A DNA stretch of 64,000 nucleotides, from sequence record OP752703.1. One strand, given 5' to 3'. The notes under the pieces are model-generated. The model was not told the DNA's origin and ran no database searches. It saw nothing but the letters and a program-made list of their open reading frames with translations. Both the position numbers and the translations under genes were made by a program. Shown in pieces: positions 28,929-50,711 of this stretch; position 1 is the first letter of the stretch; every line of letters begins with the position of its first letter.

Positions 28929-29075
28929 ATGATTGATGAAGAAGACTTGGAAGAAGAAGTCGAAGAAGAGATTGATCCTGAAACTGAATTAAGAATTGAG
29001 GCTCGTAAGAGTATTCAGAACGCTATCGCTTATATGAATATGGGTCGTAGATTCTGTTGTGGAGGTAATGAATGA
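28929..29075 (+). CDS. Small acidic protein (48 aa, not in the ORF track)
   Basis: MIDEEDLEEEVEEEIDPETELRIEARKSIQNAIAYMNMGRRFCCGGNE*; AAGGA RBS; ATGA overlap. Confidence 0.55.
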   Translation: MIDEEDLEEEVEEEIDPETELRIEARKSIQNAIAYMNMGRRFCCGGNE

Positions 29076-29671
29076 GTATCCCCAATCTACGTAACGTTTA
29101 CCGTCAGCCTGTAAAGGGAAACTTTGAAACAGATGAATACTGTTTCTTTTGGGCTGGTCCTTTCTCTAACTGGCATCCTAGTGTGTTCAAGTACGATGGT
29201 GTAACATACAACTGTGCCGAGCAGGGTATGATGCATCAAAAGGCTATCCTATTCGGCGACCTAGAATCAGCCGACCTTATCATGAAGACCGATGACCCGA
29301 AGCTACAGAAGGCTCTAGGTCGTGGCGTGAAGGGTTATGTAGAATCGGAGTGGGTAGATAAACGATATGATATTGTTTACGGTCTTCTGCACGCTAAGTT
29401 TGACCAGAACATTGATCTTGCCGACATTCTTCTAGCAACTGATGATCTATGCATTGTGGAAGCTTCCCCTTACGATAAGGTGTGGGGGATTGCGATGGGT
29501 GTAGACAAGTACCCTCAGATTCTTGATAAAAGGAACTGGAAGGGTGAAAACCTATTAGGTAGTATCTTGATGGATGTTCGTTATGACTTCCAGCAAATTA
29601 GATATTATGAGTCTGTCAATGATGAAGTCATGGGGGAAATGGAATGTGACCAATATAGTATACACTCTTGA
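29072..29671 (+). CDS. NADAR (YbiA-like) family hydrolase
   Basis: PFSNWH, AEQGMMHQKA.LFGD, VEASPYDKVWGI, GENLLGSILM. Confidence 0.9.
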   Translation: MSIPNLRNVYRQPVKGNFETDEYCFFWAGPFSNWHPSVFKYDGVTYNCAEQGMMHQKAILFGDLESADLIMKTDDPKLQKALGRGVKGYVESEWVDKRYDIVYGLLHAKFDQNIDLADILLATDDLCIVEASPYDKVWGIAMGVDKYPQILDKRNWKGENLLGSILMDVRYDFQQIRYYESVNDEVMGEMECDQYSIHS

Positions 29672-32144: not shown

Positions 32145-32195
32145 AGGGGTTTGGTAGTCAAACCCCTTGACTTACAGGCAGAGACGCCTTATAAT
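32145..32195 (+). promoter_or_regulatory. Sigma70 promoter for nadV overlapping an inverted repeat
   Basis: TTGACT 32167-N17-TATAAT 32190; AAGGGGTTTG-gtagt-CAAACCCCTT. Confidence 0.75.
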
Positions 32196-32264
32196 TCTCA
32201 ACATCGAAACACAACAACAACTCAACGTAACAAATTCATTCAATCACTAAGGAGTTTAGGATAT

Positions 32265-33674
32265 ATGAATATTAATACTGACAACATCGTGCTTAGAACC
32301 GACGGATATAAAGTGCTTCAATACAAGCAGTATCCGCCGAAGACCACTAAGGTATTCTCATACGGTGCATCACGCGGTAGCAAGTACACTGATAAGACCC
32401 TATTCGCCGGTCTACAGTACTACCTAAAGGCTAATCTAGCCAAGCCCCTAACCCACGCAGACATTGACTTTGCTAAGATCGTCCTAGACGCTTATGGTAC
32501 GGGCTTCAATGAAGCTGGCTGGCGCTACATCGTAGACAAGCACGCTGGCATCTTCCCGCTACGTATCCGTTCACTACCGGAAGGAACTATTGTACCAACT
32601 GGTACGGTTCTATACACGGTTGAGAACACGGACAGCGAATGCTTCTGGCTTGTCAGCTACCTAGAGACTGCAATTCTTCGTGACGTATGGTACATGACCA
32701 CGGTCGCTACCAACTCGCGTCTATGTAAGGAAGTAATCCTAGAAGGTCTAGAGAAGACTTCGGACAACGCTGCCGATCAGGAAGTGATGTTCAAGCTACA
32801 CGACTTCGGCGCTCGCGGTGTTAGTTCACACGAAAGTGCTGGTATGGGCGGTCTGTCGCACATCATCAACTTCAATGGTTCGGACACCCTAGAAGGTATT
32901 ACGTTCGCTATGAAGTACTATGACGCACCGGTCAGTGCATTCGGTATTCCGGCTTCGGAACACAGCACGATCACGTCATGGGGCCGTAATGGTGAGTACG
33001 ACGCTTATGCCAACATGGTTGAACAGTTTGCAAAGCCGGGTGCAATCTTCGCTTGCGTAAGTGATAGCTACAACATTTACGAAGCTGCACGTGGCTGGGC
33101 AACCTCGGGTCTACTAGACAAGGTTAAGGAAAAGGGTGCCATCGCGGTTATCCGTCCTGACAGTGGCGATGCAATGACTGTTCCGATCAAGATCATTGAA
33201 ATCCTTATGGAAGAAGTTGGTTACACGGTCAACAGTAAGGGTTTCAAGGTTCTACCTGACCACGTTCGCGTAATTCAGGGTGACGGCATCAACCGTGAAT
33301 CGCTAAAGGTTCTAGTTCAGAACATGATCGACGCCGGTCTAAGCCTAAGCAACCTAGCCTTCGGTATGGGTGGCGGTCTACTACAGCACGTCAACCGTGA
33401 CGATCTAAAGTTCGCACAGAAGTGCAGTGCTGCTCAGGTCGCTGGTGTATGGCGTGATGTTTACAAAGACCCGGTGGATTCACCGGACAAGAAGTCGCTA
33501 AAGGGTCGCTTGTCGGTCATTCGTAATGTAGAAACGGGCGAGTACCGTAACCACGTAACGGATTACCCGATTCCCGAAGGCTTTGAAGATGCGATGGTAA
33601 TCGTATACGACAATGGCATCGTGGACAGTGCAATGCTAACGCTTGAACAGGTTCGCGCTAACTCGAACAAGTGA
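32265..33674 (+). CDS. nadV: Nicotinamide phosphoribosyltransferase (NAMPT)
   Basis: TDGYK, LHDFGARG, PASEHS, VSDSY, IRPDSGD, IQGDG, FGMGGGLL; start from AGGAG/AGGA RBS. Confidence 0.95.
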   Translation: MNINTDNIVLRTDGYKVLQYKQYPPKTTKVFSYGASRGSKYTDKTLFAGLQYYLKANLAKPLTHADIDFAKIVLDAYGTGFNEAGWRYIVDKHAGIFPLRIRSLPEGTIVPTGTVLYTVENTDSECFWLVSYLETAILRDVWYMTTVATNSRLCKEVILEGLEKTSDNAADQEVMFKLHDFGARGVSSHESAGMGGLSHIINFNGSDTLEGITFAMKYYDAPVSAFGIPASEHSTITSWGRNGEYDAYANMVEQFAKPGAIFACVSDSYNIYEAARGWATSGLLDKVKEKGAIAVIRPDSGDAMTVPIKIIEILMEEVGYTVNSKGFKVLPDHVRVIQGDGINRESLKVLVQNMIDAGLSLSNLAFGMGGGLLQHVNRDDLKFAQKCSAAQVAGVWRDVYKDPVDSPDKKSLKGRLSVIRNVETGEYRNHVTDYPIPEGFEDAMVIVYDNGIVDSAMLTLEQVRANSNK

Positions 33675-33730: not shown

Positions 33731-34039
33731 ATGCAGGAAGCTGAATTAGACTTCTCGATAATTGTTAAAGCTAAACAGCTAGCTAACAAATATCCAGAAC
33801 AATATGAATATTTCTACAATACTACTGGTGATATTCATATGTTTTACATCAATGTTGGTGTAGGCGGTGGAGTTAGGATTGAAATATATCCATTCTTCAA
33901 TTATCCGTATAAGCAGTTAAGTAAATATGATGTTTACTCGCCCTCATTTAAACGAGAAAAGAACGCTGTATTCGTAACTAAGATTTCAAACGAATGGACA
34001 GTCATGAGAGACAATTCAAGGAATACACATGAAAAATGA
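33731..34039 (+). CDS. Hypothetical protein
   Basis: AT-rich ORF. Confidence 0.6.
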   Translation: MQEAELDFSIIVKAKQLANKYPEQYEYFYNTTGDIHMFYINVGVGGGVRIEIYPFFNYPYKQLSKYDVYSPSFKREKNAVFVTKISNEWTVMRDNSRNTHEK

Positions 34040-34784
34040 TTATATTAACATCTTCGCAGAAGAAAGCCGCAATAGTTATAATAAATGCTATGATATAACT
34101 TTAGTTATGATTAAAAAGGCAGTAACTCGTTACCCAAGTAGATTCTCTGTAGAAGTGTTCGATAATGGTAATTCGTTTGTACTTAAAGATAAGGAAGAAG
34201 GAATCTATAGATTCAGTAGGCATAATAAACCTATAACTGATGCTTACTATTCAGATCAATCTTCCCGAATTATGTCTACTGAACTTGCATCACTTTGTTC
34301 TCGTTTAGATTCGATCTGTGCTGAAAACAACAAGTGGAACGCCCGCTTTCTAAATCTAGCTAAGACTGTTGCAGCTTATTCCAAAGACCCATCCACTAAG
34401 GTCGGTGCTGTGATTGTAGATGATGACGACAACGTTAGAACGATTGGCTACAATGGTTTCCCTCGCGGCGTAAAGGATACAGAAGAACGACTAAATGATC
34501 GTTCGATTAAGTATCCTCTAACAGTTCATGCAGAGTTGAATGCCATTTGTACCTGTGCTAGAGTAGGCGTACCTACTAAGGGTGCGACAATGGTATGTAC
34601 CCACTTCCCTTGTGCAGACTGCGCTGGTGCAATCGTTCAGGCAGGCTTTAAGGAAGTAGTGGTTCTAGCCCCAAGTGAGGATTTCGATTCTCGCTGGAAT
34701 GAAACTAATAACTTCGCTCGCACAATCTTTACCGAAGGTAACGTTGATGTGATAGTCTTCACAGAAGACGAAATAAAGGAATAA
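34029..34784 (+). CDS. dCMP deaminase with an N-terminal extension of about 105 aa
   Basis: SKDPSTKVGAVI, GYNGFPRG, HAELNAI, PCADC. Confidence 0.92.
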   Translation: MKNDYINIFAEESRNSYNKCYDITLVMIKKAVTRYPSRFSVEVFDNGNSFVLKDKEEGIYRFSRHNKPITDAYYSDQSSRIMSTELASLCSRLDSICAENNKWNARFLNLAKTVAAYSKDPSTKVGAVIVDDDDNVRTIGYNGFPRGVKDTEERLNDRSIKYPLTVHAELNAICTCARVGVPTKGATMVCTHFPCADCAGAIVQAGFKEVVVLAPSEDFDSRWNETNNFARTIFTEGNVDVIVFTEDEIKE

Positions 34785-34788
34785 TGGT

Positions 34789-35424
34789 ATGACCACCGAC
34801 CCACTAGATTTCTTGGATGGCCTAATCGCTAAAGACAAGATGATCGCTGATATGAACATTCAATCGCCAGTTGTATATAACCCTACGTTCTTGACCAAGG
34901 ACGAAGCGGATGCGTATTACAACTATTTCTTAAACATTGAGTGGGACGAACGTACTCCGGCTCGCCGTGAGGCTTTCTACTCGACCGTAGGAAAGGATTA
35001 CACGTATGGTTCGGGTGAGTTCGCCCGTACTTACACCCCACGTTCTATGCACGATGAATCTAATCTACTGCACCTTTCCAATAAGTCATTTTTGGCGTTC
35101 ACTGAATCGTACTTCAAGCCATTTGAACTATGCTTCTTGAACCGTTACGAGAATGAGAAACAGCAATTGGGCTGGCACGCTGATGACGATACTGCCATCG
35201 ACCACACGCGTCCGATTGCCGTAATCTCTCTAGGCGCTGAACGTGAAATTTACATCAAGCCGATTGGTGGTAAGGATTCAGAGAAGGAGAAGATTCGTCT
35301 TGCTCACGGTTCTCTGCTATTGATGCTACCGGGTATGCAGCAGACTCATGTTCACAGAATTCCTAAGAACGACCGTCCGTGCGGCCCTCGTATCTCACTA
35401 ACCTATCGAGGTTACATTGGCTAA
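34789..35424 (+). CDS. alkB: AlkB-family 2OG-Fe(II) dioxygenase
   Basis: WHADDD, ISLGAER, HGSLLLM, HRIPK, RISLTYR. Confidence 0.9.
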   Translation: MTTDPLDFLDGLIAKDKMIADMNIQSPVVYNPTFLTKDEADAYYNYFLNIEWDERTPARREAFYSTVGKDYTYGSGEFARTYTPRSMHDESNLLHLSNKSFLAFTESYFKPFELCFLNRYENEKQQLGWHADDDTAIDHTRPIAVISLGAEREIYIKPIGGKDSEKEKIRLAHGSLLLMLPGMQQTHVHRIPKNDRPCGPRISLTYRGYIG

Positions 35425-35800
35425 CATTTCTCACGAACAACTGAGCAAACTAACAGAAGGTCAATTATTTGATCTTAGTCAGACTATCATTGCCAACTTG
35501 AAGAAGAGGGCAACTAGAGTACAGCCGAAGACATACCATATCATCCAACATTACTCTGGATGTTATACTTTCCCTCCTTACACTACGCAGACTCCGAATT
35601 TCATCAAGGACGAATTTGCGAAGTTCAAGGAAAAATTTAAGAACTTTGTTCAGACTGACCCTAAAACCGGGCGTATACATGTGTCCCCCGTAGCTTACTA
35701 TCATTTCATCAGAAAGTTCTACAAGTATATCAAAGATGAAGATGCTAGTCCTGTAGAATTGAAATTTGAAATTGTATTAAAGGAAGACCCTACTAGGTAA
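35417..35800 (+). CDS. Hypothetical protein (TTG start)
   Basis: Open frame with GAGG upstream. Confidence 0.6.
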   Translation: MANISHEQLSKLTEGQLFDLSQTIIANLKKRATRVQPKTYHIIQHYSGCYTFPPYTTQTPNFIKDEFAKFKEKFKNFVQTDPKTGRIHVSPVAYYHFIRKFYKYIKDEDASPVELKFEIVLKEDPTR

Positions 35801-35878: not shown

Positions 35879-36409
35879 ATGTCAACGATCATTGTAATGA
35901 CTGGCCTTCCGGGGTCAGGGAAGGACACTTGGATCAATAATTTCCTAAAGTCAGAGCGTGGTTCAACCTATAAGGTTGTCAGCACTGATATGTACTTGGA
36001 AGAGATTGCAAAGGAAGAAGGTCTAACCTATAACGATGTATTTGAAGAGCGCTTTAGGGACGCTGAGAAGCGTATGAATGCTGCTGTTCAGGTATACGTT
36101 AAGGAAGACGTGGACGTTATCTGGAACCAGACTAACCTCGGGTTGAAGAAGCGTGCAAAGATTCTTAACATCTTTAAGAAGTATGAGAACAAGTTCTGTA
36201 TCTCCATCATCATTGATGAAGACGTTCACCGTCAGCGTCTCGATGCTCGCGCAGAACGTGAAGGAAAGACTATCTCTGAGTCAGTGATTCGTAAGATGAA
36301 CTACGACCGAGTAGAGCCTTCTCTAGAGGAAGGATTCCATTCAGTAATGGTTCTGGATACTTCTGGCGATACTCCTGAGTTGGTGTCGTTTACTCAGGTT
36401 CAACACTAA
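35879..36409 (+). CDS. P-loop polynucleotide kinase-like protein
   Basis: VMTGLPGSGKDTW, VSTDMY, WNQTNL, RLDAR. Confidence 0.8.
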   Translation: MSTIIVMTGLPGSGKDTWINNFLKSERGSTYKVVSTDMYLEEIAKEEGLTYNDVFEERFRDAEKRMNAAVQVYVKEDVDVIWNQTNLGLKKRAKILNIFKKYENKFCISIIIDEDVHRQRLDARAEREGKTISESVIRKMNYDRVEPSLEEGFHSVMVLDTSGDTPELVSFTQVQH

Positions 36410-36420
36410 CTAAATTATAG

Positions 36421-36461
36421 TTGACAAGTCAAACGCCGCTAGTTATACTAGCGGCGTTTTC
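36421..36461 (+). promoter_or_regulatory. Promoter with -10 at the loop of a 12-bp hairpin
   Basis: TTGACA-N17-TATACT; AAACGCCGCTAG-ttata-CTAGCGGCGTTT. Confidence 0.8.
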
Positions 36462-36479
36462 AATTTCAAGGAATAACAA

Positions 36480-37790
36480 ATGGCTGTTATGCTGGTCGAA
36501 TCGACCGATCCCAATCTATCGTTCCATCTTAAAAAGAACCCTGCCACTGGCTTGGTTGTAAAGCGTATGCGTAAGGGCGCACTATCTGGCTGGTATCCTA
36601 ACGGTGATACACAGAAGTACGCACTGTTCTTCCACGATGACACCAACAACTCTTCATTTGCTAACGATGGAAAGAACTACACTGATATGACGCGCTACAC
36701 CAGCACGTACTTCGTGTTCCATTCCATTAGCACTATGTTCAGTTCGGTTCTAAAGCTGGATGCTTCGCAGCAAGTATTCAAGCACAAGATCACCATTCCG
36801 TCTGTGCAGATGCGTGCAGAGAAGACCATTGGTCATCTTAACAAGTTCTTGAACCTTGGCCTAACCGTAACCAAGAAGTCTGAGGGCATCGATAGCCTCG
36901 CGCTATATTCGGTCACGTTGGAGCTAGAATCGACGTTCAATGAGTTCATGATGCGTACCTACGTACTCTTCTACCTTCTTCACGCAGACCTGTTCCAGAG
37001 CGATCTAGGCTATATGGAAGGTATGATTGAAAAGGTTACCAAGATTCTAGTAGAGCTAAAGGCTGAATACTTCCTATGGTATCTGTTCAATAAGAACATC
37101 ATCTGCCGTGAATCAACATTCAAGAAGCTACAGCCGACTCTAGGCAACGGTAGCCAAGACGGAAAGATTGAACTACACTATGGCGGAACGCAGCAGCAAC
37201 GCAAGGCGTTCGTTGACTCCCAAATGGACTTCAAAAATGATGTATTGGATATTGGTTGCGGTGAGGGTTATTTCCTACTACCGTATGCTAAAAAACTTCA
37301 TAATGGTAAAACGATTACTGGCGTCGATAAGGACGCAAGGCTTATCAACGGTATTGCTAACAAGGTTGAAGACCGTAAGCAAGAAGATAAGGTAAGTCTG
37401 TTCACGTCGATGGACGATTTCTACGCACAATATGATAATTCTGTCAAGGATATTATCTGTGTTGAAGTAATCGAACATATGCCTGAGAAGGATGCGTTTA
37501 ACCTTCTACGTGAAGCTTTGATGAAGGTTCGTTTCCGTAAGGCAATCATCACGACTCCGAACCGCGACTTTAATCAATTCTACAAGACTATGGTTGGTTT
37601 CCGTCATGACGATCATCACTTTGAATTTAATAATGCAGAGTTTGAGGCATTCATCAAATCGGTAAATGATTCGATCTGGATGGAAGAAGACTGTCCGTAT
37701 TGGGAATTTGAATACATGCCCGTAGGCGATATCGTCAACGGTATCTCAATGGCTCAGGCCGTTGTAATCACTAACAAGATGGAAGAATAA
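36480..37790 (+). CDS. hen1: Hen1-type 3'-terminal RNA 2'-O-methyltransferase
   Basis: N-terminal LSFHLKKNP; VLDIGCGEG; VEVIEHM; TTPNRDFN; FRHDDHHFEF. Confidence 0.88.
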   Translation: MAVMLVESTDPNLSFHLKKNPATGLVVKRMRKGALSGWYPNGDTQKYALFFHDDTNNSSFANDGKNYTDMTRYTSTYFVFHSISTMFSSVLKLDASQQVFKHKITIPSVQMRAEKTIGHLNKFLNLGLTVTKKSEGIDSLALYSVTLELESTFNEFMMRTYVLFYLLHADLFQSDLGYMEGMIEKVTKILVELKAEYFLWYLFNKNIICRESTFKKLQPTLGNGSQDGKIELHYGGTQQQRKAFVDSQMDFKNDVLDIGCGEGYFLLPYAKKLHNGKTITGVDKDARLINGIANKVEDRKQEDKVSLFTSMDDFYAQYDNSVKDIICVEVIEHMPEKDAFNLLREALMKVRFRKAIITTPNRDFNQFYKTMVGFRHDDHHFEFNNAEFEAFIKSVNDSIWMEEDCPYWEFEYMPVGDIVNGISMAQAVVITNKMEE

Positions 37791-37791
37791 A

Positions 37792-39096
37792 ATGGATTAC
37801 TCTCTACAAAACAAGATCGCTCGCCGCTTGAAGCAGCTAAAGCGTGACAATGTAAAGTTTATCTCAGGAACGATTGCTCCTGCACAATCCTGTACCGATG
37901 TTATGTCTATTGAGCCGGTACACACGGCTCTAGAATATTACGAAGAAAAGGATATGGACCTAAAGCTATCCGTCCAGCTAAAGTGGATGGGGTCGCGTGG
38001 TAGCATGTATCTCTTCCAAGGTAAGCTAGAAGATTCTTTCCTAGTAACACGTAGTGGTTTCAAGATCGGATACGGTTCTGACCGTCTAGAAGACTCGAAG
38101 AATTTCTTCAAGCATTGGTACAAGAAGGTATTTGACGATGCCGCCTTTGCTGGTGCCAGTGAAGTCATTCTAGATGGCGAGGCTATGCCGTGGAATGCAA
38201 TCGGTGAAGGTTTGATTCAGCGTCAGTTCGTTGGCTACTCAATGGCCGTGCATGCCGAAGTTGACTTCCTAGAAAAATACAATTTTGGCGATGCAATCCG
38301 TAATACGATTATGTCCGATGCTATGGGTGATTACGACAAGCTAGAGCCTGAACAAAAGAAGAAGCATCCGATGCGTGAGACTTATGAAATCATCGCAGAA
38401 GGTTTGGCTAATTACGATAACGATACTCAGCGTGAATGTATTGATAAGTTCGACACTCAGTTGGATAATTACAATCGTAATGAAAAGCCCTTCTTCGTAG
38501 CGTTCGACATTCTTCGAATTAAGTACCCGGACGGTACAGTAATGGTAGATGAAGGCTGGCTAGCTTCACACGTCACCAAATACAGCTTCCTGCGTACCAA
38601 GTGGCCTGCACCGGCTAAGAAGATGGTCAAGCGAATCATGGATGCTATCGCTGAAAAGAACGATTATGTGTCTGGTGATAATATTTCATTCAGGGATATT
38701 TTCGACATTGGCCTTCCTGTTGGGGCCGATTCGGATACCCAAGAGCAGTTGGAAGAGCTTATGGCTCTTGTTCAGAGCTTTGGGTTTGAAGGTATCATGG
38801 TTAAGCCCGAATTCCCTATGGATACCGATGCTGTTCACGCCATGAAAATTCGTAATCCCGAGTATCTACGTTTGATTTATGGTCATGACTATACGATTAA
38901 GGGTAAGTACGAAGCGCTAGTTGAAGGTAAGCGAACAGGTAAGAAGCGTAAGCTATCGCATAATGAATATCGCCTAGGTATTCAGATGCTAAAGCTGAAT
39001 GAATCTTCTCCAACCTATGAAGAAGACTTCGAGCGCATTGCCAAGAAGATTCTTTTCGACATTGAAGAAGAATCAACGGTTGATAGTCGTCTATAA
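37792..39096 (+). CDS. Pnkp-type RNA ligase (stand-alone ligase domain)
   Basis: KWMGSR (adenylylated Lys motif), DGEAMPW, EGIMVKP, KIRNPEYLRLIYG, C-terminal VDSRL. Confidence 0.85.
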   Translation: MDYSLQNKIARRLKQLKRDNVKFISGTIAPAQSCTDVMSIEPVHTALEYYEEKDMDLKLSVQLKWMGSRGSMYLFQGKLEDSFLVTRSGFKIGYGSDRLEDSKNFFKHWYKKVFDDAAFAGASEVILDGEAMPWNAIGEGLIQRQFVGYSMAVHAEVDFLEKYNFGDAIRNTIMSDAMGDYDKLEPEQKKKHPMRETYEIIAEGLANYDNDTQRECIDKFDTQLDNYNRNEKPFFVAFDILRIKYPDGTVMVDEGWLASHVTKYSFLRTKWPAPAKKMVKRIMDAIAEKNDYVSGDNISFRDIFDIGLPVGADSDTQEQLEELMALVQSFGFEGIMVKPEFPMDTDAVHAMKIRNPEYLRLIYGHDYTIKGKYEALVEGKRTGKKRKLSHNEYRLGIQMLKLNESSPTYEEDFERIAKKILFDIEEESTVDSRL

Positions 39097-39152
39097 CTCT
39101 TGATAATTATATCGGGTTGAGTACAATGGAGTCCTACAAACAAGGACAAACC

Positions 39153-39857
39153 ATGACTACTCAACCCGAAACCGTTTCTGAACCGCAGCTACTAGACAGC
39201 ATCAAGGACTTTGATGAATACATCCAGCTTGCTATCCGAACGGAATCCCCACAGTCAAATAAAACGGACCTCGAAGTCCTACGTATCGCTCTAGGCTTGA
39301 ACGCAATTACTGCTGATATCCTAGACGCTTTCAAGAAGCAAATCTTCTACGGAAAGGAAGAGAAGCTAAACGAAACTCTACTTCCTAACATCAATCAGAT
39401 CGCTAACCTAGTAATGCATCTAACCATGCTTCTACATGGTGTACCGGATGGTGAAGGTAATCTAGTCAAGGATGAAAACACCGGCCTGCATCTAGCCGAA
39501 GAACTACCGGGTGACATTCGTACCCTTCACGCTCTACTAGGTGTCATCACCGAAGGCGGCGAGCTAGCTGAAATCATGGTCAAGGCCATTGAGAATGAAG
39601 GTGAGATTGACGCAGTTAATCTACACGAAGAGCTACACGACATTAGCTGGTACAGTGCTATCGCCCATGACGCTAATGGTCTAGACTTCCTAATCGGTCT
39701 ACGCAACAACATCAACAAGCTAATCAAGCGTTACCCTCAGAAGTTTGATTCACACTTTGCTGCTAATCGTGATCTAACGGCTGAACGTGAGCAGCTTGCC
39801 GAAGGTCTAGTTGCTGAACGAAAGGCTCGCTCTGACCAGTCAGAGAATGATGAATAA
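39153..39857 (+). CDS. mazG: MazG-like nucleoside triphosphate pyrophosphohydrolase
   Basis: LLGVITEGGELAE...NLHEELHDISWY...NINKLIKRYP. Confidence 0.8.
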   Translation: MTTQPETVSEPQLLDSIKDFDEYIQLAIRTESPQSNKTDLEVLRIALGLNAITADILDAFKKQIFYGKEEKLNETLLPNINQIANLVMHLTMLLHGVPDGEGNLVKDENTGLHLAEELPGDIRTLHALLGVITEGGELAEIMVKAIENEGEIDAVNLHEELHDISWYSAIAHDANGLDFLIGLRNNINKLIKRYPQKFDSHFAANRDLTAEREQLAEGLVAERKARSDQSENDE

Positions 39858-39898
39858 TAATTAATTTCATAGTAAATAAACAGATAGGAGGCTTCACA

Positions 39899-40369
39899 AT
39901 GAACAAATCAATACTAGTGTTGACACTTGCTCTAATCCTATCTGGCTGTGGGAAAAAGACTGATGATGAAATTCGATACGATGCTATCGACCAACGTACA
40001 GTCAGATTTCTTGATAGAGCCGAGACAGGGTTAAAGCCTTGTCTCGATTCTATTGGAAACAAAAACAGCACGGATATGACTATCGCAATTAATTGTCAAA
40101 CAGCAGTCCAGTTGTATAGGAAGTACGGCGGACGCCCACATTTAGAACCACTACCCTTGACGTTGATTAGGGATAGTGATAAGATTCGCGCTATAAAGCT
40201 AGTTGACGATTTAGATATTGTCGATGCTAGATTTGCTGAAATTGAAGAAAAGTACAAAGACAACATGTACTTTAATCAAGTCCTAATGACTCAATCATTT
40301 GCCCAACAGGCAGCGGACACAGCATCATCTAAAATCGATGAAGCCAAAGAAGTTGACAGTAAAAATTAA
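39899..40369 (+). CDS. Lipoprotein
   Basis: Signal peptide with lipobox LSG-C; GGAGG RBS. Confidence 0.8.
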   Translation: MNKSILVLTLALILSGCGKKTDDEIRYDAIDQRTVRFLDRAETGLKPCLDSIGNKNSTDMTIAINCQTAVQLYRKYGGRPHLEPLPLTLIRDSDKIRAIKLVDDLDIVDARFAEIEEKYKDNMYFNQVLMTQSFAQQAADTASSKIDEAKEVDSKN

Positions 40370-40541
40370 GGCGCTTATAATGACTATTCGAGACTGGATG
40401 AAACAAAACATCATCGATACAAAAGCTAGATTACAGGAAGAAGAGGTTGAAATTCTCGAACAGAGGGTTTATAATTCTCCTGCACTAGACGAAGAGTCTG
40501 AGCGCGAACCACCATCAACTAACCTATACAAGAAAACTTAA
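40299..40541 (+). CDS. Hypothetical protein (start uncertain)
   Basis: Fills the gap between two genes. Confidence 0.45.
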   Translation: MPNRQRTQHHLKSMKPKKLTVKIKALIMTIRDWMKQNIIDTKARLQEEEVEILEQRVYNSPALDEESEREPPSTNLYKKT

Positions 40542-40543
40542 AT

Positions 40544-41131
40544 ATGACCAATCCTGCTATTATCCTTGACCTTGACGATACCCTAGGTAACATCAAAGAG
40601 CGTCTACAAAACATTTATCGTAAGAAGACTGGCCGTACTGACATTCACTACCGTGACTGGAAGGACTTTGGTTCGGTTCATTATGATTTCAGCTTTGATG
40701 ACCTAACTCAATTCTTCATTGAAGATAATACTCTACGACTAATGCGTCCACATGCTGGCACCATTGAAACCACTGCACGCCTAAAGTCACTAGGCTATGA
40801 TATTCACATTGTAACCGCACGTGGCTGGCACCCGGATGCTCAGGCTATTACCGAGGCTTGGCTAACCGAAAACAATATTACATTCGATCAAGTACATATC
40901 GTTCCGTTCGGTCAGTGTAAGGAAGAACTAACTCGTACCATCCCCAATATTGCATTCTTCGTAGATGATCGCATCGACCACTGCCTAGCTATGCACAAGT
41001 CGGGTCGAGTAGACAAGCAGGTTCTAGTTTATGCACAGCCGTGGAACGAAGATCAGTTTGTGGAACATGAAGGTAAGGACGATAGCTTCCAGCGAATCGA
41101 AGATATCCGCGAAATCCTACGATTCCTATAA
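40544..41131 (+). CDS. HAD-family 5'(3')-deoxyribonucleotidase-like phosphatase
   Basis: ILDLDDT, IVTAR, FFVDD, QPWN. Confidence 0.85.
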   Translation: MTNPAIILDLDDTLGNIKERLQNIYRKKTGRTDIHYRDWKDFGSVHYDFSFDDLTQFFIEDNTLRLMRPHAGTIETTARLKSLGYDIHIVTARGWHPDAQAITEAWLTENNITFDQVHIVPFGQCKEELTRTIPNIAFFVDDRIDHCLAMHKSGRVDKQVLVYAQPWNEDQFVEHEGKDDSFQRIEDIREILRFL

Positions 41132-41199: not shown

Positions 41200-41484
41200 A
41201 TGCGACACATCAATAAAGAACGTTTCACAAAACTTGTTGACAAAGGTGCTATGCTTGTTGATATGCGTAGTCCTGTTGCTTTCCGCAATGGTCACATTGC
41301 CGGGGCAAAGAACCTAACTCTAAGACAGTTCGCTAATCATTTAATGACTGTTAAAGATAAAGCTACCACAATCATTGTGTATTGTGATACCTTCTGTGAA
41401 GATGATTTAAAGCATGCTTTAAACTATGCCAGTCAGTTGGGATTTGATAAAATACTAACTGCGGATTATCATTTTATAAAATAA
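41200..41484 (+). CDS. Rhodanese-domain protein
   Basis: LVDMRSPVAFRNGHIAGAKNL...IIVYC. Confidence 0.85.
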   Translation: MRHINKERFTKLVDKGAMLVDMRSPVAFRNGHIAGAKNLTLRQFANHLMTVKDKATTIIVYCDTFCEDDLKHALNYASQLGFDKILTADYHFIK

Positions 41485-41485
41485 T

Positions 41486-41511
41486 AAAAATCCCGCCTAG
41501 GCGGGATTTTT
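41486..41511. terminator. Bidirectional terminator between convergent genes
   Basis: AAAAATCCCGCC-ta-GGCGGGATTTTT. Confidence 0.85.
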
Positions 41512-42535: not shown

Positions 42536-43288
42536 TTAACCTCCATTAATATTATGTGTAACTGGAATTCCTTGATTTGTTACTATTTCTCCATTATTCC
42601 CCACAAATGTGGGTGATGATGGAGCAGTCCAAGTGTTTTGATACTGTATGGCAGGATCGTATACCTTTTCTGCCCACAAGGTAACACGCTGTCCTCGGCC
42701 AGAAAGGAAAGCACGAATATTCCACACTCTGCCTTGTTCGCGTAGCGTAATGATGGTGGTTTCGTTTGATCTTGCATACGTTAGTACGTCGAAGTTCAAT
42801 GGAGTCGTTGTTAAGTTATATGCATCATATGAATTAACATCTAGTGATGCATCATATACCGTAACTCTACGGAAATCGATAACCTCAGTCCCCGTAACTG
42901 TTTGCACCCACGCTTTACTATTGTTGGCATCATAATACGTATACACAATACGTACATTATTCATGGTCAAAGACAACTGAGAACCCGCTGAATTAATATT
43001 TCCGCTAGTAGCAAGGATTACCGGGGGAGGCGATGATAATCCGATTTTTGTAGGGGTTTGACCTCTCACGGTATTATGACCGTTACCTTCGAGGAAGGTT
43101 AGACCTTCCCCTAATAGTAAGTCTGATTCTTGATTGATAGGAACACCACCTAGAGTAACGCCGTCACCAACAAAGAATTGTTGTAAGTCTATATCCCATG
43201 CAGGCTCGCCATCATCTAATACCACTTGTAGTCTTTCAGCGGAAGTACCACGTCTAACTAAAATTTTACCTAACAAATTCACGTCCAT
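42536..43288 (-). CDS. Tail-fibre-like protein with an Mtd_N-type N-terminus
   Basis: ILVRRGTSAE...LDDGEPAWDID...FVGDGVT. Confidence 0.65.
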   Translation of the reverse strand: MDVNLLGKILVRRGTSAERLQVVLDDGEPAWDIDLQQFFVGDGVTLGGVPINQESDLLLGEGLTFLEGNGHNTVRGQTPTKIGLSSPPPVILATSGNINSAGSQLSLTMNNVRIVYTYYDANNSKAWVQTVTGTEVIDFRRVTVYDASLDVNSYDAYNLTTTPLNFDVLTYARSNETTIITLREQGRVWNIRAFLSGRGQRVTLWAEKVYDPAIQYQNTWTAPSSPTFVGNNGEIVTNQGIPVTHNINGG

Positions 43289-43304: not shown

Positions 43305-46300
43305 TTATTGGAACTCGCCAGCATCGTACCCTTCTGACGGTTCTGCTGGCATTTCAGTACCGTCTAGCGTATTCTTGAAATCTTCTGGTTGGGTGGTATA
43401 TTGCATACCATCAAAAGATGCGTCGAATATATTAATTGTAATAACTTTATCTACTTGTGTAGTTACTGGGGTTGATTCTACACGGAATCCTACAGTATAC
43501 GTTCCGATTGTTGTAGGAGTTCCAGTTACCGCACCTGACTGCATATTAACTACAAGACCATCTGGTAATGGTTTGCTTGGATCGATAGTGAATATGTAAT
43601 TTGGGTTAGGTCCACCAGTAACACTTAGCTGGCCTTCATATGGGATTTTAACCATTCCCTCTTCTGGTATCTGCAATACATCAAGAACTAGTTGAGGAAC
43701 TGGCGAAGGCGTTGGCGTTGGGGATGCTTGGGCTGATGGAGTTACGGTATTACTTGGAGTTACTGTCTGTGTCACTGTCGGAGTAACCGAAGCAGTTTGG
43801 CTCGGAGTTACTGCCGGTGTTCCACTTGGAGTTACTGCCGGTGTTGACGAAGGTGAGAAGCTAATCGTCGGAGTTACTGTCGGAGTAATCGAAGCAGTTT
43901 GGCTTGGAGTTACTGCCGCTGTTTGTGTAGGTGTAGCCGTAGGAGACGACATTGGACTTGACGTTGGCGTTGGGCTTGGTAATACTGGAATAGTGTCTCG
44001 AATGCCAATGAACCCAATGTAAGTAGACGTTACATCGCTGGAATCATTTACATTACTTGAATATTTCCAAGATTGCGCACGCAGAATCATTCTATGTACG
44101 TCATAGTGTAAGTATGTCATATTCATTAGAGGATTATCGTAGTTAACAATGTTCAACTTAGCCCATGGTGAATGGGTGGTTGCATCCCAAAAAGTATGAG
44201 AATTTGTTGGTACGATATTAGTTCTAATGTAATCATAATTTACTACAGTGGTGGGCTGACCATCAACGATTTGTCCACTTTCAGAGATATATTCAAATGT
44301 GTAAGGGTCGAATGCATAAATTATATTACTATTATATGAAGACGCTAGCATTTTTGTAAAATCTGCCGAAGTAGTGATATGAGTAAATGTAGGTAGATTA
44401 TATGCGCTTACATCGGAAACAATGAAATCTGACCCAATTAGAGATTCATATCTCTTAGCAATGATCTTACTAGTGAAGCCGTCAGCGGAGCCATCATCTA
44501 CATTTACTGTAAAGATTACAGTGAAGTTCGGGTTAGGCGGCTGAGAGGTACTACCGATAAATTCACCAGCATTACCTAGATATCTTGCAGGAGCATTTTG
44601 GATAGTAAATGTTCCGTCACCATTATTTCTATTGATTGCTGTCATGATTAGAACTTCACCATCAACGGATGCAGTGGTCTTGGTGATGAAGTAAATTCTA
44701 TCATGTAATGTATTGGTTTCATCATCGTATGCTTTATCAACATACAATCTATCAATTGTTCCAAGTAAAACATTTCGTATCAGTGGTGATAGGTTGACCG
44801 TCTTAGTCGGTATAGGTAATGTTTGGCCTACCGGAGTAGTTGACCAATCTAAAAGATTGTTTTCTGTCAATTCCCACATATGCATTTGATATGTACCATC
44901 TGCCACATTACTCTCAGCCAAAATTAAAGAATTGCTACGAGGTAAGAAGGAAAAGTTACTGTACTTAATATCAGGATTGCTATTAGGTCCAGTGTACGCT
45001 AATTTGGTTACGTTATATCCATCGTCACTTAGAAGTGCAATAGTAAATTTATTTAATTCATCAGCGTGGTCAAGGGTAATGATTTTTGAAGTTTGTTCTA
45101 CTTCATTCCCATTCTCATCCTTTTCTACCAAGAAATAGCTGTTACGTACCATCAATTTATCATCATGGATTAAGCCTGTTGTGTCAGATGCTCTTGCGTT
45201 GTCTGATGGAACTGAATCACTTACATTACTTTCAATATAATATAGAGTGTTTTCAGTTGGAACTGGTGTCATTGATGGAGTTATTGACGGTGTTGGTGTT
45301 GGTGTTGGTGAAACATCGGGAGCTTCTGTTACGATAAACACAAGCTCCTTAGTGAACGATCCACCTACAGAATCGACCATCGTTACTGGAATGGTATGTG
45401 TTCCCGGTGTTCGGATGTAACCATAGAAGTACGGCTGTTGTGGATCAACAGTATCATCGAAAACTAATTCAGGATAATTCTCAGGAGTTACACTTGGAGC
45501 AGAGAATGTATATGGAGCAATACCACCGCTTGGATTTACTGTAACCTCGATATTAGATGTAGTTTCTATTTCTTTAGCACCACCGAACCACATATCTAAC
45601 GTCTCTTGGTATACGTAAATGGTTACCATTTCAACATCATATTTAGAACCGGAGTCTACACGAACGCCTATTTCATACGAACCCGCCGCAGTAGGTACGC
45701 CAGAGATTACACCACTGCTAATATCTAATGTTAATCCCTGCGGTAGACCTCCTGACCAAATTGAGTAGGTGTAAATTCCATTACCTCCACTAGCATTTAG
45801 CTGGGATGCGTAAGGTTGATCTATAACGCCCCTAGATGCAGCAACATCCGTAACATTCAATATTACGTCAGGGATTCCCGAAGGAGTTACTGACGGTGTT
45901 GGTGTAGGAGTAGGTGTATTAGATATAGAAACTGATGGAGTTATAGTTGGTGTTACTGAAACGAATGGAGGGACAACGCCACCTTTTTCAGAATAGACAC
46001 TTTCGATTCCATTTACAACTGCCTTAATTCGGAACAAATAGGTTTCACCCGGCTGTAAACCTATACCGCTTAATGTCATATGGCGAGGCCAGTCAAGCTC
46101 AGGGTTTTCCTTGAAATCAGCATATACTCTCCATAACTGATCTTCATTAGGTGCAATAGTTTGCCACAAAATCTGGTCAGGTTTCGGATTAAGCGTACCT
46201 TGCCATGAATTGATATCAATCATAGCACGTACTAGTGTTGTATACGGATCGAAATAGAAGGTCCAATCATCATCAAGGAACGGAAGAACTACTAATGCTG

Positions 46301-47852
46301 ATGGGCTTGGCGTGACACTAGGAGTTACCGCAGCAGTTACGCTAGGAGTGGCCGTCAATGTAGGTGTAGTGCTTGGTGTAATCGAAGCAGTAACCGATAT
46401 TGAAGCTGTTACTGTCGGAGTAGCGGTAGCTGATGGATCAGGAGTAGACGCAGGTGTTCCACTATTTGACACCGTAGGAGTAATCGTCGCTGTTACCGAT
46501 GGGGTAGCAGAATTAGTAGGAGTAACTTCCGCTGTTACTGACGGAGTATTGCTTGGCGTAACGTCAGGTGTACCACTGTTACTTACAGTCGGTGTTATGG
46601 TAGGTGTTACTGACGCCGTTGGAGAAGGTGTAGCACCAGCAGTCACACTAGGAGTTGCAGAAAGCGACGGGGTTGTACTTGGTGTTACCGAAGCAGTAAC
46701 CGATACCGAAGCTGTTACTGTCGGAGTGGCAGTAGCCGATGGGTCAGGAGTAGCTGCTGGTGTTCCACTATTTGAAATGGTAGGAGTAATCGTCGCTGTT
46801 ACCGATGGGGTAGCAGAATTAGTAGGAGTTACTGCGGATGTTCCAGTAGGTGTATTGCTTGGTGTAGCACCCGGAGTTCCTGAATTACTTACAGTCGGTG
46901 TTATTGACGCTGTTACAGTTGCCGTTGGAGAAGGCGTAGCACCAGCAGTCACACTAGGAGTCGCTGAAAGTGACGGAGTAGCGGATGCCGTTGGAGAAGG
47001 TGTAGCACTCACATCAGGCGTTGCGGAAATTGTAGGAATAAAATACGGAGACGGCGTTCCATACAAAGTAGGAGTCAAATACACTGACGGGGTTGCATAC
47101 AGCGATGGCGTAGTTGTCATCGTTACAGACGGAGTGTTCGTAGCTGTTACAGATGGCGTTACCGATGGCGTAGCAGTACTAGTAGGCGTTACCGAAGTTG
47201 CCGGAGTTCTAGTCTGTGATAGAGTAGGCGTTGCGGTAACAGATGGTAGAATATATAGAATTTTAGAATCTGATGTACTGGACTTTGTTCCTACCTTAGC
47301 CTTAATTTGCATTAGGAAATTAGAGCCTCTAACCATATTACGAGGAATAGACATAGGGTATCCAGTGAATGGAATACTTACCCACATGTTAGTAGTGGAA
47401 CACCATACCTCAATAAAGTCGGGTAGTTTTGTAGTATCACCCTGCCATGAGTTAATTATAGCGATAGCTTCTTCACTATTATGTGGAACCCAAGTCATAT
47501 CTCTACCAGACATGTTAGGAACCGCATCCAAGGTCCAGTCCGATTCTATAAATGGAAGTACCATGTTAGTAGTCGGAGCGGATGTTGGCTGCGGAGTATT
47601 ACTCGGGTACGGTGTATTAGTCGGGGTTGCACCGGGGGTCGGGCTAACTCTAGCTGTACGAGAAGGGGTTACTGTTGGTGTCGCCGATGCTGTTGGCGTC
47701 GGAGTTATTGTTACGCTTCGAGTGACGGAAGGCGATGGTGGTGGAACTGGCGAGATTTCAGGACTCGACCCTCCACACCCACAACATCTACTGTTAACAC
47801 TGCTTATCGCTAACGGAACAATATCTGGCTCGGCGGCCGGTCTGATAATCAT
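43305..47852 (-). CDS. Giant S/T/P-rich virion protein (1515 aa) with two putative Ig (He_PIG-like) domains and a duplicated beta domain
   Basis: LPQGLTLD..SGVISGVPT.AGSY and LPDGLVV..SGAVTGTPT..GTY; two VLPF..DW...INSWQG...PD domains; long TPS stalks. Confidence 0.85.
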   Translation of the reverse strand: MIIRPAAEPDIVPLAISSVNSRCCGCGGSSPEISPVPPPSPSVTRSVTITPTPTASATPTVTPSRTARVSPTPGATPTNTPYPSNTPQPTSAPTTNMVLPFIESDWTLDAVPNMSGRDMTWVPHNSEEAIAIINSWQGDTTKLPDFIEVWCSTTNMWVSIPFTGYPMSIPRNMVRGSNFLMQIKAKVGTKSSTSDSKILYILPSVTATPTLSQTRTPATSVTPTSTATPSVTPSVTATNTPSVTMTTTPSLYATPSVYLTPTLYGTPSPYFIPTISATPDVSATPSPTASATPSLSATPSVTAGATPSPTATVTASITPTVSNSGTPGATPSNTPTGTSAVTPTNSATPSVTATITPTISNSGTPAATPDPSATATPTVTASVSVTASVTPSTTPSLSATPSVTAGATPSPTASVTPTITPTVSNSGTPDVTPSNTPSVTAEVTPTNSATPSVTATITPTVSNSGTPASTPDPSATATPTVTASISVTASITPSTTPTLTATPSVTAAVTPSVTPSPSALVVLPFLDDDWTFYFDPYTTLVRAMIDINSWQGTLNPKPDQILWQTIAPNEDQLWRVYADFKENPELDWPRHMTLSGIGLQPGETYLFRIKAVVNGIESVYSEKGGVVPPFVSVTPTITPSVSISNTPTPTPTPSVTPSGIPDVILNVTDVAASRGVIDQPYASQLNASGGNGIYTYSIWSGGLPQGLTLDISSGVISGVPTAAGSYEIGVRVDSGSKYDVEMVTIYVYQETLDMWFGGAKEIETTSNIEVTVNPSGGIAPYTFSAPSVTPENYPELVFDDTVDPQQPYFYGYIRTPGTHTIPVTMVDSVGGSFTKELVFIVTEAPDVSPTPTPTPSITPSMTPVPTENTLYYIESNVSDSVPSDNARASDTTGLIHDDKLMVRNSYFLVEKDENGNEVEQTSKIITLDHADELNKFTIALLSDDGYNVTKLAYTGPNSNPDIKYSNFSFLPRSNSLILAESNVADGTYQMHMWELTENNLLDWSTTPVGQTLPIPTKTVNLSPLIRNVLLGTIDRLYVDKAYDDETNTLHDRIYFITKTTASVDGEVLIMTAINRNNGDGTFTIQNAPARYLGNAGEFIGSTSQPPNPNFTVIFTVNVDDGSADGFTSKIIAKRYESLIGSDFIVSDVSAYNLPTFTHITTSADFTKMLASSYNSNIIYAFDPYTFEYISESGQIVDGQPTTVVNYDYIRTNIVPTNSHTFWDATTHSPWAKLNIVNYDNPLMNMTYLHYDVHRMILRAQSWKYSSNVNDSSDVTSTYIGFIGIRDTIPVLPSPTPTSSPMSSPTATPTQTAAVTPSQTASITPTVTPTISFSPSSTPAVTPSGTPAVTPSQTASVTPTVTQTVTPSNTVTPSAQASPTPTPSPVPQLVLDVLQIPEEGMVKIPYEGQLSVTGGPNPNYIFTIDPSKPLPDGLVVNMQSGAVTGTPTTIGTYTVGFRVESTPVTTQVDKVITINIFDASFDGMQYTTQPEDFKNTLDGTEMPAEPSEGYDAGEFQ
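46320..46980 (-). repeat. Tandem 306-bp (102-codon) duplication inside the stalk
   Basis: ggagaagg(t/c)gtagcaccagcagtcacactaggag at 46621 and 46927; gaagcagtaaccgata at about 46384 and 46690. Confidence 0.8.
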
Positions 47853-49371: not shown

Positions 49372-49662
49372 ATGCTTGATACTGCTAAAGAAAGTGCTTA
49401 CATTTATGATGGGAAAGAAGTTAGATTGACTGGACGCTTGGCTAAACGCCCGGTGTATGGTAAGAATAACCCTAACGTAGCTGTAGGTGAAATGACTATT
49501 GTTGAAATCGCTCCAAAAATTGGTAGTGCTATCTCTTCCGATCCAAACTTGGTACAATGGGTAAACCCCCGACATTTGTTCTATGTTGTATCTGAACAAG
49601 TTGTTGTCACCAACGAGTTGATCGACTCGCTAATTGAAGAGAATAGTAAATCAGATGATTAA
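49372..49662 (+). CDS. Hypothetical protein
   Basis: TAAGGA RBS; TAAATA upstream. Confidence 0.7.
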   Translation: MLDTAKESAYIYDGKEVRLTGRLAKRPVYGKNNPNVAVGEMTIVEIAPKIGSAISSDPNLVQWVNPRHLFYVVSEQVVVTNELIDSLIEENSKSDD

Positions 49663-50164
49663 ACAAATCAGCGTAATCGCAGCCGTAGATAATTCCTACG
49701 GCTTCGGGAAGGATGGAAAGATTCCGTGGCACTACCCGGAAGACTTTAAATTCTTCAAAACAAAGACAGAGAACTCTGTCGTAATCATGGGTAAGGCTAC
49801 CTATGATGATCTTGTAGGATACACCAAGGGGGATAATTTCCTACCTACCCGTGAGTGTATCGTCCTCACACGCTCCACAGAGACGCCTCCTTACGCCAAC
49901 GTAACATTCGTCACCAACCATGCGGACGCTCTAGAGAAGGCTCGCACGTTTGACTGTGAAGTGTTCTACATTGGTGGAGAGAACGTCTTTACCTATGGTC
50001 TAAGTGTAGCTGATACGGTGTACCTAACCCATATCAATAAATATTTCGATTGTGACAAGTTCTTCCCTCTGGATAAACTATCACAGCATTTCATGGTAGG
50101 TACGAGTAAGGCTTCTGAGAAGCACTCTGAACTAACCTACAAGACGTATGTAAGGAACAAATAA
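49655..50164 (+). CDS. frd: Dihydrofolate reductase
   Basis: IAAVD..YGFGKDGKIPWHYPEDFKFFK, VIMGKATY, YIGGE, CDKFFP. Confidence 0.93.
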   Translation: MIKQISVIAAVDNSYGFGKDGKIPWHYPEDFKFFKTKTENSVVIMGKATYDDLVGYTKGDNFLPTRECIVLTRSTETPPYANVTFVTNHADALEKARTFDCEVFYIGGENVFTYGLSVADTVYLTHINKYFDCDKFFPLDKLSQHFMVGTSKASEKHSELTYKTYVRNK

Positions 50165-50165
50165 A

Positions 50166-50711
50166 ATGGCTAGGAGCTTAATGGAAATTCTAATGGAAGA
50201 AAAGATTACCGATCTAGGTAAGGACGGTACGTATATCGCTGTGCGTTTCACAAAAGAATCACAGGACAAGCTACAGGCTCTTGCTAAGAGTCTAGAAGTG
50301 GATAACATTGTCGCCAAAGACAAGTATCATGTTACTGTTGTATTCAGCCGCAAGCCTTTCACTAATTTCACTATCAGTGGAAAGCTAAAGAAGCCATGGC
50401 TAGTCCATCCTACCGAACTTGAAATCTTCCCGACTCAATCGGGTTCAAGAGCTTTGGTTCTACGTCTGGATGCTCCTAAGCTTGTTCAGCGCCATGAATA
50501 TTTCAAGAAAGAACATGGTGCAACATATGACTATGATGAATACAAAACTCATGTTACACTAAGCTATGACGTTGGCCCGGATTGGGAAATTCCAGAAGAC
50601 TTCAAGGCTGATCGCATGTTCAAGACTTTGAGCATTGACGAAGAGTATTACGAGCCTCTGAATAACGATTGGGCTAGCAAATCAACTGAATCAAACGAAG
50701 ATAAGGAATAA
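50166..50711 (+). CDS. acb1: Acb1-like (T4 gp57B) 2H phosphoesterase, anti-CBASS nuclease candidate
   Basis: GTYIAVRF...YHVTVVFSR...LVLRLD...HGATYDYDEYKTHVTLSYDVG...EYYEPL..DW mirrors T4 57B; two HxT motifs. Confidence 0.85.
   Translation: MARSLMEILMEEKITDLGKDGTYIAVRFTKESQDKLQALAKSLEVDNIVAKDKYHVTVVFSRKPFTNFTISGKLKKPWLVHPTELEIFPTQSGSRALVLRLDAPKLVQRHEYFKKEHGATYDYDEYKTHVTLSYDVGPDWEIPEDFKADRMFKTLSIDEEYYEPLNNDWASKSTESNEDKE

Follow-up and report, generated by a model that had tools for sequence, protein, structure and literature searches.

A predicted phage variant of the Pnkp1–Rnl–Hen1 system of RNA repair, without a known 3′-phosphatase, in Stenotrophomonas jumbo phages

The closest described relatives of the locus reported here, a kinase–Hen1–Rnl gene cluster of Stenotrophomonas jumbo phages, are bacterial RNA repair systems whose ligase is activated by the methyltransferase Hen1. 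In the Pnkp1–Rnl–Hen1 system of Capnocytophaga gingivalis (PDB 4XRP/4XRU; Wang, Selvadurai & Huang 2015, PMC4411300), the RNA ligase Rnl stands as its own protein, the kinase carries the phosphatase as a fused T4-type HAD domain, the three proteins assemble into a heterohexamer, and tRNA cut by colicin or other ribotoxins is repaired only when all three proteins are present, yielding a methylated product that resists re-cutting. The classic Pnkp–Hen1 system of Clostridium thermocellum and Anabaena variabilis likewise combines a kinase, a Hen1-activated ligase, and 2′-O-methylation of the junction, and its ligase and methyltransferase domains are homologous to those of the phage proteins; unlike the phage genes, however, it places kinase, phosphatase, and ligase on one polypeptide of ~870 aa, in which the phosphatase is a metallophosphoesterase module. 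The T4 pathway of Pnkp and Rnl1 is a further point of comparison, as the phage studied here also encodes a T4 RnlA-like ligase, but the T4 pathway is without methylation.

The stretch of DNA that we analyzed (64,000 nucleotides, hereafter the window) corresponds to bases 186001 to 250000 of phage RAS14 (OP752703.1) and is 100% identical to the Stenotrophomonas jumbo phages RAS14 and CM1. The phage carrying the locus measures 320 kb. Every gene of the region is annotated as a hypothetical protein in RAS14, and the CM1 record is without any annotation.

A phage locus of the Pnkp1–Rnl–Hen1 type

Three consecutive genes on the plus strand form the center of the locus. They encode a stand-alone Pnk-fold P-loop kinase (35879–36409; 176 aa; AAA_33, E 2e-20), Hen1 (36480–37790; 436 aa; Hen1_N, E 2e-44, together with an S-adenosylmethionine (SAM) methyltransferase domain), and Rnl, a stand-alone Pnkp-type RNA ligase (37792–39096; 434 aa; PNKP_ligase, E 2e-20). 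An original prediction, made from the letters of the window, had named a kinase, a full-length Hen1, and a stand-alone Pnkp ligase domain in this order; the open reading frames (ORFs) and Pfam domains agree, and an ORF check of the window recovered every ORF that it named. The best solved relatives of all three proteins are chains of a single PDB entry, the Capnocytophaga complex 4XRP. Hen1 aligns from end to end with 4xrp_C (E 6e-32), both halves of Rnl align with 4xrp_B (E 2e-24), and the kinase finds its best PDB sequence match in 4xrp_A, the kinase domain of Pnkp1 (E 5e-6). The classic Pnkp–Hen1 proteins align only to the Hen1 methyltransferase core and the C terminus of the ligase, and the corresponding NCBIfam equivalog models score far under their cut-offs (86 versus 340 bits for Hen1; 64 versus 750 bits for the ligase, TIGR04075).

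The catalytic motifs of both Hen1 and Rnl are intact. As judged from Pfam and the alignment to 4xrp_C, Hen1 comprises an N-terminal ligase-activating domain and a C-terminal RNA 3′-terminal 2′-O-methyltransferase, and its SAM motif (LDIGCGEG), its metal motif (EVIEHMP), and the stretch FRHDDHHFE are invariant in four phages. In Rnl, the residues invariant in four divergent phages are the motif I lysine K64 (KWMGSR), D128/E130, E333-G334..K338, and K352/R354, with motifs III to V invariant in all four. A phage-borne system that heals, seals, and methylates RNA, as first proposed, is thus well supported by homology to the reconstituted complex.

The two hallmarks of Pnkp1–Rnl–Hen1 found here are a Hen1 with N-terminal activating and methyltransferase motifs and a stand-alone Rnl with the motif I lysine. 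The kinase–HAD fusion of that system is missing: the 176-aa phage kinase has no HAD domain and belongs to a different, stand-alone family. The single kinase–metallophosphoesterase–ligase polypeptide of classic Pnkp is missing as well, ligase and kinase being separate genes. By homology, we therefore read the locus as a phage variant of the known Pnkp1–Rnl–Hen1 system, without any known 3′-phosphatase. This differs from the original prediction, which saw a classic Pnkp–Hen1 system taken apart. The split that it noted is largely the normal state of Pnkp1–Rnl–Hen1, because the ligase is already a separate protein there. Neither the kinase nor the ligase has a fused phosphatase domain; because the phosphatase of Pnkp1–Rnl–Hen1 is a HAD domain fused to the kinase, the missing piece would be a PNKP-type HAD and not a metallophosphoesterase. 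Gene arrangement differs too, as hen1 is distant in Capnocytophaga, whereas the three phage genes are adjacent.

Two sets of phages offer further comparisons. Xanthomonas phage XacN1 has the same order of kinase (ORF199), Hen1 (ORF198), and ligase (ORF197), with orthologs of Hen1, Rnl, the kinase, and a downstream HAD phosphatase at 52%, 40%, 45%, and 48% identity, respectively. The XacN1 paper named "PNKP" and Hen1 as genes for tRNA repair (Yoshikawa et al. 2018, PMC5852040); it applies the label PNKP to the ligase-only ORF197 and does not discuss the missing phosphatase or the cassette nature of the genes, and GenBank mislabels the ORF197 ligase as a metallophosphoesterase. Elsewhere in the literature, we found no mention of Hen1 for a jumbo phage. 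Vibrio phages RYC and vB_VpaM_sm033 also carry Hen1 and Rnl homologs (27–31% identity), but there Hen1, kinase, and HAD_PNKP are fused into one protein of 717 or 726 aa, so that the phosphatase is present, whereas the CM1 parts are separate genes. These fusions (RYC, L006:7001-9154; sm033, L007:6998-9178) run Hen1_N, methyltransferase, kinase, HAD_PNKP, with Rnl just upstream, and are annotated only as "polynucleotide kinase".

Hen1 and Rnl as a two-gene unit beside a backbone kinase

Hen1 and Rnl occur together in only 5 of 50,697 phage records, namely CM1, RAS14, XacN1, and the Vibrio phages RYC and sm033. The gene order AlkB–kinase–Hen1–Rnl–MazG–HAD–rhodanese is common to the window, XacN1, and the metagenomic loci L025, L042, and L043. 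The conserved backbone around Hen1 and Rnl consists, in the window, of NAMPT (32151–33674), a dCMP deaminase (34029–34784), an AlkB-like 2OG-Fe(II) dioxygenase directly upstream of the kinase (34789–35424), a MazG-like pyrophosphatase (39117–39857), and a rhodanese (41200–41484). Two further metagenomic loci, L026 and L027, have the same backbone, with the kinase at 43–48%, MazG at 42–45%, and the HAD at 50–51% identity, and neither Hen1 nor Rnl was found within their syntenic locus, which was the region searched. The sister phage Xoo-sp13, which is cultured and has a complete genome, shows the order AlkB, kinase, MazG, one ORF, HAD; across its entire genome there is no tblastn match to Hen1 or Rnl and no PNKP_ligase match. 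Hen1–Rnl is thus a unit of two genes that a genome either has or lacks, precisely between the kinase and MazG. Because Xoo-sp13, L026, and L027 retain the kinase and the HAD without Hen1–Rnl (the HAD at 50–53% identity across the relatives that lack the pair), they are backbone genes, and the kinase lies outside the mobile cassette.

The boundary between kinase and Hen1 is marked in the DNA. A GC-rich, terminator-like hairpin of 13 bp lies between the two genes on the plus strand (36431–36459) and is followed by a U-run (UUUUCAAUUU). The segment that holds it (36405–36480) folds at −23.4 kcal/mol with a z score of −6.6, and none of 200 shuffled sequences folded as well. A promoter-like site (36421–36449; TTGACA-17-TATACT, 11 of 12 matches) overlaps the hairpin. 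Similar hairpins, judged by eye and not by folding, occupy the corresponding position in XacN1 and follow the kinase gene of Xoo-sp13. The kinase had been taken for a fragment of Pnkp; as a backbone gene with a family of its own, set off from Hen1 by a strong terminator-like hairpin, it does not fit that description.

Beyond cultured phages, IMG/VR yielded 13 further Hen1 loci in several layouts: classic Hen1 plus Pnkp, a metallophosphoesterase–ligase fusion, the Vibrio-type fusion, bare Hen1 plus Rnl, and a truncated Rnl beside a TnpB-like gene. Classic-type pairs occur in viral contigs L012, L013, L015, and L021, and bare Hen1–Rnl pairs with no kinase detected nearby occur in L020, L024, and L044. 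All viral loci in which the two genes are readable show the ligase paired with a Hen1. Most of these viral Hen1 proteins were identified by BLAST or tblastn; Hen1_N was confirmed with Pfam for the window, RYC, sm033, L025, L042, L043, and L044. In two IMG/VR loci (L022:5929-7982 and L019:401-1273), the Rnl beside Hen1 is only 290 aa long and is without its N-terminal part. The short Rnl of L022 directly follows a TnpB/Cas12f-like ORF, and a transposon insertion may have disrupted this ligase. Giant-virus-like contigs also carry Hen1 with Rnl or Pnkp (L044 and L013/L014); L044 has ATG8, FtsH-like, and FNIP/LRR genes, and L013 bears a GVMAG contig name.

In bacteria, Hen1, Rnl, kinase, and HAD_PNKP form a single colinear run in Flavobacterium, Dysgonomonas, and Niabella, an arrangement that recurs in ~30 Bacteroidota species (L053, L055-L084). 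The tally of 2015 listed Pnkp1–Rnl–Hen1 in 10 species, with hen1 distant from pnkp1-rnl (PMC4411300). In Listeria sensu lato, Hen1 is followed by an Rnl-like region, and the ~1.4 kb that precede this region may accommodate a long Pnkp.

The kinase itself is probably still an RNA repair enzyme, an RNA 5′-OH kinase, as judged from homology and a structural model. Its AlphaFold2 model has a predicted local distance difference test (pLDDT) score of 93, and the closest folds are polynucleotide kinases (mouse PNKP and C. thermocellum Pnk, with template modeling (TM) scores of 0.71–0.73), although the PSTK fold matches about equally well. The family was found in 21 phage records; the P-loop residues G9..K15 together with D37, T85, R92, and R124 are invariant in 21 homologs, and the lid arginines R120/R124 are conserved in the homolog alignment. 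The Pnkp1-like fusions of Vibrio phages have kinase domains of low similarity to this kinase, at 15–19% identity, and BLASTP against phage RYC gave an E value of 0.34.

Homologs of the kinase at 36–38% identity lie directly after a T4 Rnl1-type ligase in Ruegeria phage RpAliso (38% identical to the CM1 kinase) and Synechococcus phage BUCT-ZZ01. RpAliso in addition has a stand-alone HAD_PNKP (PF25109, E 2e-29) ~1.2 kb upstream, a gene that RAS14 and CM1 lack, and this arrangement is a naturally split T4-type Pnkp. The three RpAliso genes (L100:3904-4530, L099:1766-3483) fall within ~3.6 kb, and both halves of the split enzyme are annotated "polynucleotide kinase". The RAS14 genome holds a broader tRNA toolkit, with a T4 RnlA-like ligase, an Rnl2-like ligase, Thg1, PTH2, and tRNAs that include two tRNA-Lys. 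Because the kinase family adjoins Rnl1-type ligases elsewhere and RAS14 has a T4 RnlA-like ligase, the kinase may serve more than one ligase, including the T4 Rnl1-like enzyme that RAS14 encodes elsewhere.

The 3′-end healing step and alternative readings

The genome as a whole lacks a canonical 3′-end-healing domain. Neither PF25109 nor a custom HAD_PNKP model gave a match in the RAS14, XacN1, or Xoo-sp13 genome, with RpAliso as the positive control (8e-51). RtcB, LigT_PEase, and 2_5_RNA_ligase2 were not found in RAS14 or XacN1, PNK3P was not found in RAS14, the genome in which it was sought, and the HD domain gave only a sub-threshold match in RAS14. The original prediction had pointed to a genome-wide search for a calcineurin-like phosphatase. 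RAS14 has three metallophosphoesterases, all far from the locus, at 69 kb (phrog_1649), 145 kb (SbcD-like), and 157.8 kb (phrog_547). We rejected them as the Pnkp phosphatase, as none has BLAST similarity to the phosphatase modules of viral Pnkp proteins. The phrog_547 protein is also not specifically tied to the cassette, because its family is present in 1335 phage records, including that of Xoo-sp13. In RAS14, its gene (157837–158406) lies directly upstream of the PTH2 peptidyl-tRNA hydrolase gene (L004:1501-2480), and Sinorhizobium phage phiN3 has a phrog_547 homolog two genes from a kinase homolog. A three-genome profile returned 22 RAS14 ORFs that are common to XacN1 and absent from Xoo-sp13. 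Apart from Hen1 and Rnl, 10 of these were scanned, and no phosphoesterase was recognized among them; they comprise NADAR and GNAT proteins, weak sub-threshold peptidase-like and α/β-hydrolase-like matches, and proteins without assignment.

Two other genes of the window had been put forward as substitutes for the missing phosphatase. The HAD at 40544–41131 (plus strand, 195 aa) is real, and all four of its catalytic motifs are intact (D9, D11, T91, K126, D141, D142). Pfam places it in NT5C only (E 1.5e-5, the sole family above its cut-off), and the HAD_PNKP profile PF25109 does not match even at E 10. The nearest folds to its AlphaFold2 model (pLDDT 93) are the deoxyribonucleotidase-like 3bwv (TM 0.78) and cdN; Pnkp1 ranks 22nd in the fold search (TMq 0.49), and the top Atlas look-alikes are all NT5C clusters (score 0.95), mostly viral. 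Alignment of HAD and HAD_PNKP profiles with hhalign gave 96.5% probability over the core (E 7e-10), as is expected within one superfamily, with an insert of ~40 residues after motif I, and BLASTP against the HAD_PNKP of phage RYC aligned motif I only (E 0.5). As a rule, capped HAD enzymes have small-molecule substrates, and capless ones have macromolecular substrates. We therefore rejected a PNKP-type 3′-phosphatase identity for this protein, given the lack of a PF25109 match, the cap insert between motifs I and II, and the NT5C fold. Because of its NT5C placement, its cap insert, its retention in relatives without the cassette, and its nucleotide-pool neighbors (dCMP deaminase, MazG, and DHFR), the HAD is probably a nucleotidase, likely a deoxyribonucleotidase of the nucleotide-metabolism backbone, which leaves a role as substitute phosphatase doubtful. 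The second candidate, at 50166–50711, does fall in the 2H fold family; its specific identity, however, is Acb1, an anti-CBASS (cyclic oligonucleotide-based antiphage signaling system) phosphodiesterase whose profile it matches over the full length (PF23474, E 4e-40, positions 1–143 of 144), and we rejected it as part of the repair system. A DHFR gene (49634–50164) lies directly 5′ of Acb1, and the DHFR–Acb1 pair (49634–50711) recurs in L026 and L027.

From these data, we consider it probable that a two-gene Hen1–Rnl cassette, set beside a backbone kinase, seals and methylates RNA, with the 3′ healing enzyme left unassigned. By homology, the N-terminal domain of Hen1 would bind and activate Rnl, and the methyltransferase would 2′-O-methylate the 3′-terminal nucleoside. 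The sealed junction, most likely in the anticodon loop of a tRNA, would then resist re-cleavage by transesterifying ribonucleases, and the 5′-phosphate would most likely come from the backbone kinase. The sequences themselves show what the genes encode, that their catalytic motifs are intact, which relatives have the cassette, and that known healing phosphatases are missing; we infer that RNA is the substrate, that the kinase participates, that the proteins form a complex, and that the cassette has an anti-ribotoxin role, the last being plausible. Several points weigh against this account. Without a 3′-phosphatase, the system so read cannot heal the 2′,3′-cyclic phosphates at ribotoxin-cut ends. 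The hairpin and U-run stand between the kinase and Hen1, and the kinase persists in relatives without Hen1–Rnl, so it may have another role; its Walker A motif in this clade is GKD, not GKS/T, which is atypical, and the position three residues past the catalytic Asp is Leu or Ile. T4 Pnk has an Arg there (Arg38) that is needed to bind polynucleotide, and the Vibrio-phage fusions have this Arg as well. A complex prediction for Rnl, Hen1(1–235), and the kinase scored 0.00, which gave no answer and is not used as evidence.

These features of the kinase, namely its GKD Walker A, its lack of an equivalent of T4 Arg38, its retention in cassette-less phages, and the hairpin that sets it apart, would also be explained if it were a nucleotide or small-molecule kinase outside the repair system, with Hen1 and Rnl alone sealing and methylating nicks that bear 3′-OH and 5′-phosphate ends. 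The viral Hen1–Rnl pairs with no kinase detected nearby agree with such a division, as does the finding that the Rnl–Hen1 heterodimer alone ligates pre-healed RNA (PMC4411300). We judge it rather unlikely nonetheless: the fold of the kinase is closest to polynucleotide kinases, its best PDB sequence match is Pnkp1, and two phages have family members immediately next to Rnl1-type RNA ligases, with a stand-alone HAD_PNKP as well in one of the two. The cluster might instead hold all four activities, the HAD at 40544 removing the 2′,3′-cyclic or 3′-phosphate in trans. NT5C enzymes also hydrolyze 3′-nucleotides, the protein is catalytically intact and syntenic with the cluster in all cassette-bearing relatives, it matches phrog_415, a family named "polynucleotide kinase" (E 2e-14), it shares the hhalign core with HAD_PNKP, and the stand-alone HAD_PNKP of RpAliso offers a precedent for action in trans. 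A part for the HAD in RNA healing is unlikely all the same, considering that Pfam, fold search, and Atlas put it in NT5C and not in PNKP, that it has the cap insert and nucleotide-pool neighbors described above, and that it is equally conserved in Xoo-sp13, L026, and L027, all without Hen1 and Rnl.

An unrecognized phage protein or a host enzyme may heal the 3′ end, a real possibility that nonetheless falls short of probable. A 5′-kinase implies breaks with a 5′-OH, the other side of which carries a 3′-phosphate or cyclic phosphate, and the candidates include the two unassigned RAS14 metallophosphoesterases, at 69 kb and at 157.8 kb beside the PTH2 gene, the latter with the phiN3 homolog near a kinase homolog. 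Both are unlike the Pnkp phosphatase, however, phrog_547 is too widespread to be specifically linked to the cassette, and the 10 scanned ORFs of the three-genome profile include no recognizable phosphoesterase. Action of Rnl on DNA, with the cluster as a DNA repair module that includes the AlkB-like dioxygenase just upstream, is very improbable. Rnl relatives do match DNA_ligase_A_M weakly, but weak DNA-ligase matches are to be expected throughout the nucleotidyltransferase superfamily to which both belong; Rnl and the Pnkp ligase domain are by a wide margin the closest matches, and every readable viral locus pairs the ligase with Hen1.

A bolder proposal, which we offer tentatively and think unlikely as it stands, is that this clade runs Hen1-dependent repair and immunization of RNA with a new kind of 3′ healing or with none, the cassette in either case being a mobile counter-defense unit that uses the virus's existing end-healing enzymes. 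If healing is new, it might be carried out in trans by the capped NT5C-like HAD, a small phage metallophosphoesterase, or a protein of no known family. If there is none, Hen1–Rnl might seal and methylate nicks from metal-dependent tRNA nucleases, or might methylate tRNA in advance.

Neighboring genes and implications

Other features of the window lie around the cluster. A 127-aa ORF upstream of the kinase (35417–35800) has no Pfam or PHROG match, and its Atlas leads, which are DUF5448-like, are weak. At 41486–41511 lies a strong bidirectional hairpin that resembles a terminator. On the minus strand, an Mtd_N (major tropism determinant N-terminal) domain marks a 250-aa protein (42536–43288), which adjoins a 1515-aa protein (43305–47852), whose Xoo-sp13 counterpart is annotated "mucin-16-like"; the two may be receptor-binding or adhesin genes. 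A NADAR-domain protein (29072–29671, E 8e-44) is found in RAS14 and XacN1 and is absent from Xoo-sp13, the same pattern as Hen1–Rnl, and may be another accessory or anti-defense gene.

So far, studies of Hen1-linked RNA repair have been confined to bacteria, and which substrates it acts on in nature is still unknown (PMC4411300). The cultured phages RAS14/CM1, which carry the cassette, and Xoo-sp13, which is naturally without it, make a tractable setting in which to look for repair targets during infection, and the same pair suits the question of junction methylation as a counter-defense against anticodon nucleases or HEPN toxins. A new end-healing enzyme could lie behind the lack of any known 2′,3′-cyclic phosphatase. 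There is a practical side as well, in that the genes are "hypothetical" in RAS14 and unannotated in CM1, and the ligase is mislabeled in XacN1. Together, the predicted viral gene sets show Hen1–Rnl as a mobile core around which viruses freely swap end-healing modules, be it a fused Pnkp1, a classic Pnkp, a separate kinase, or none.

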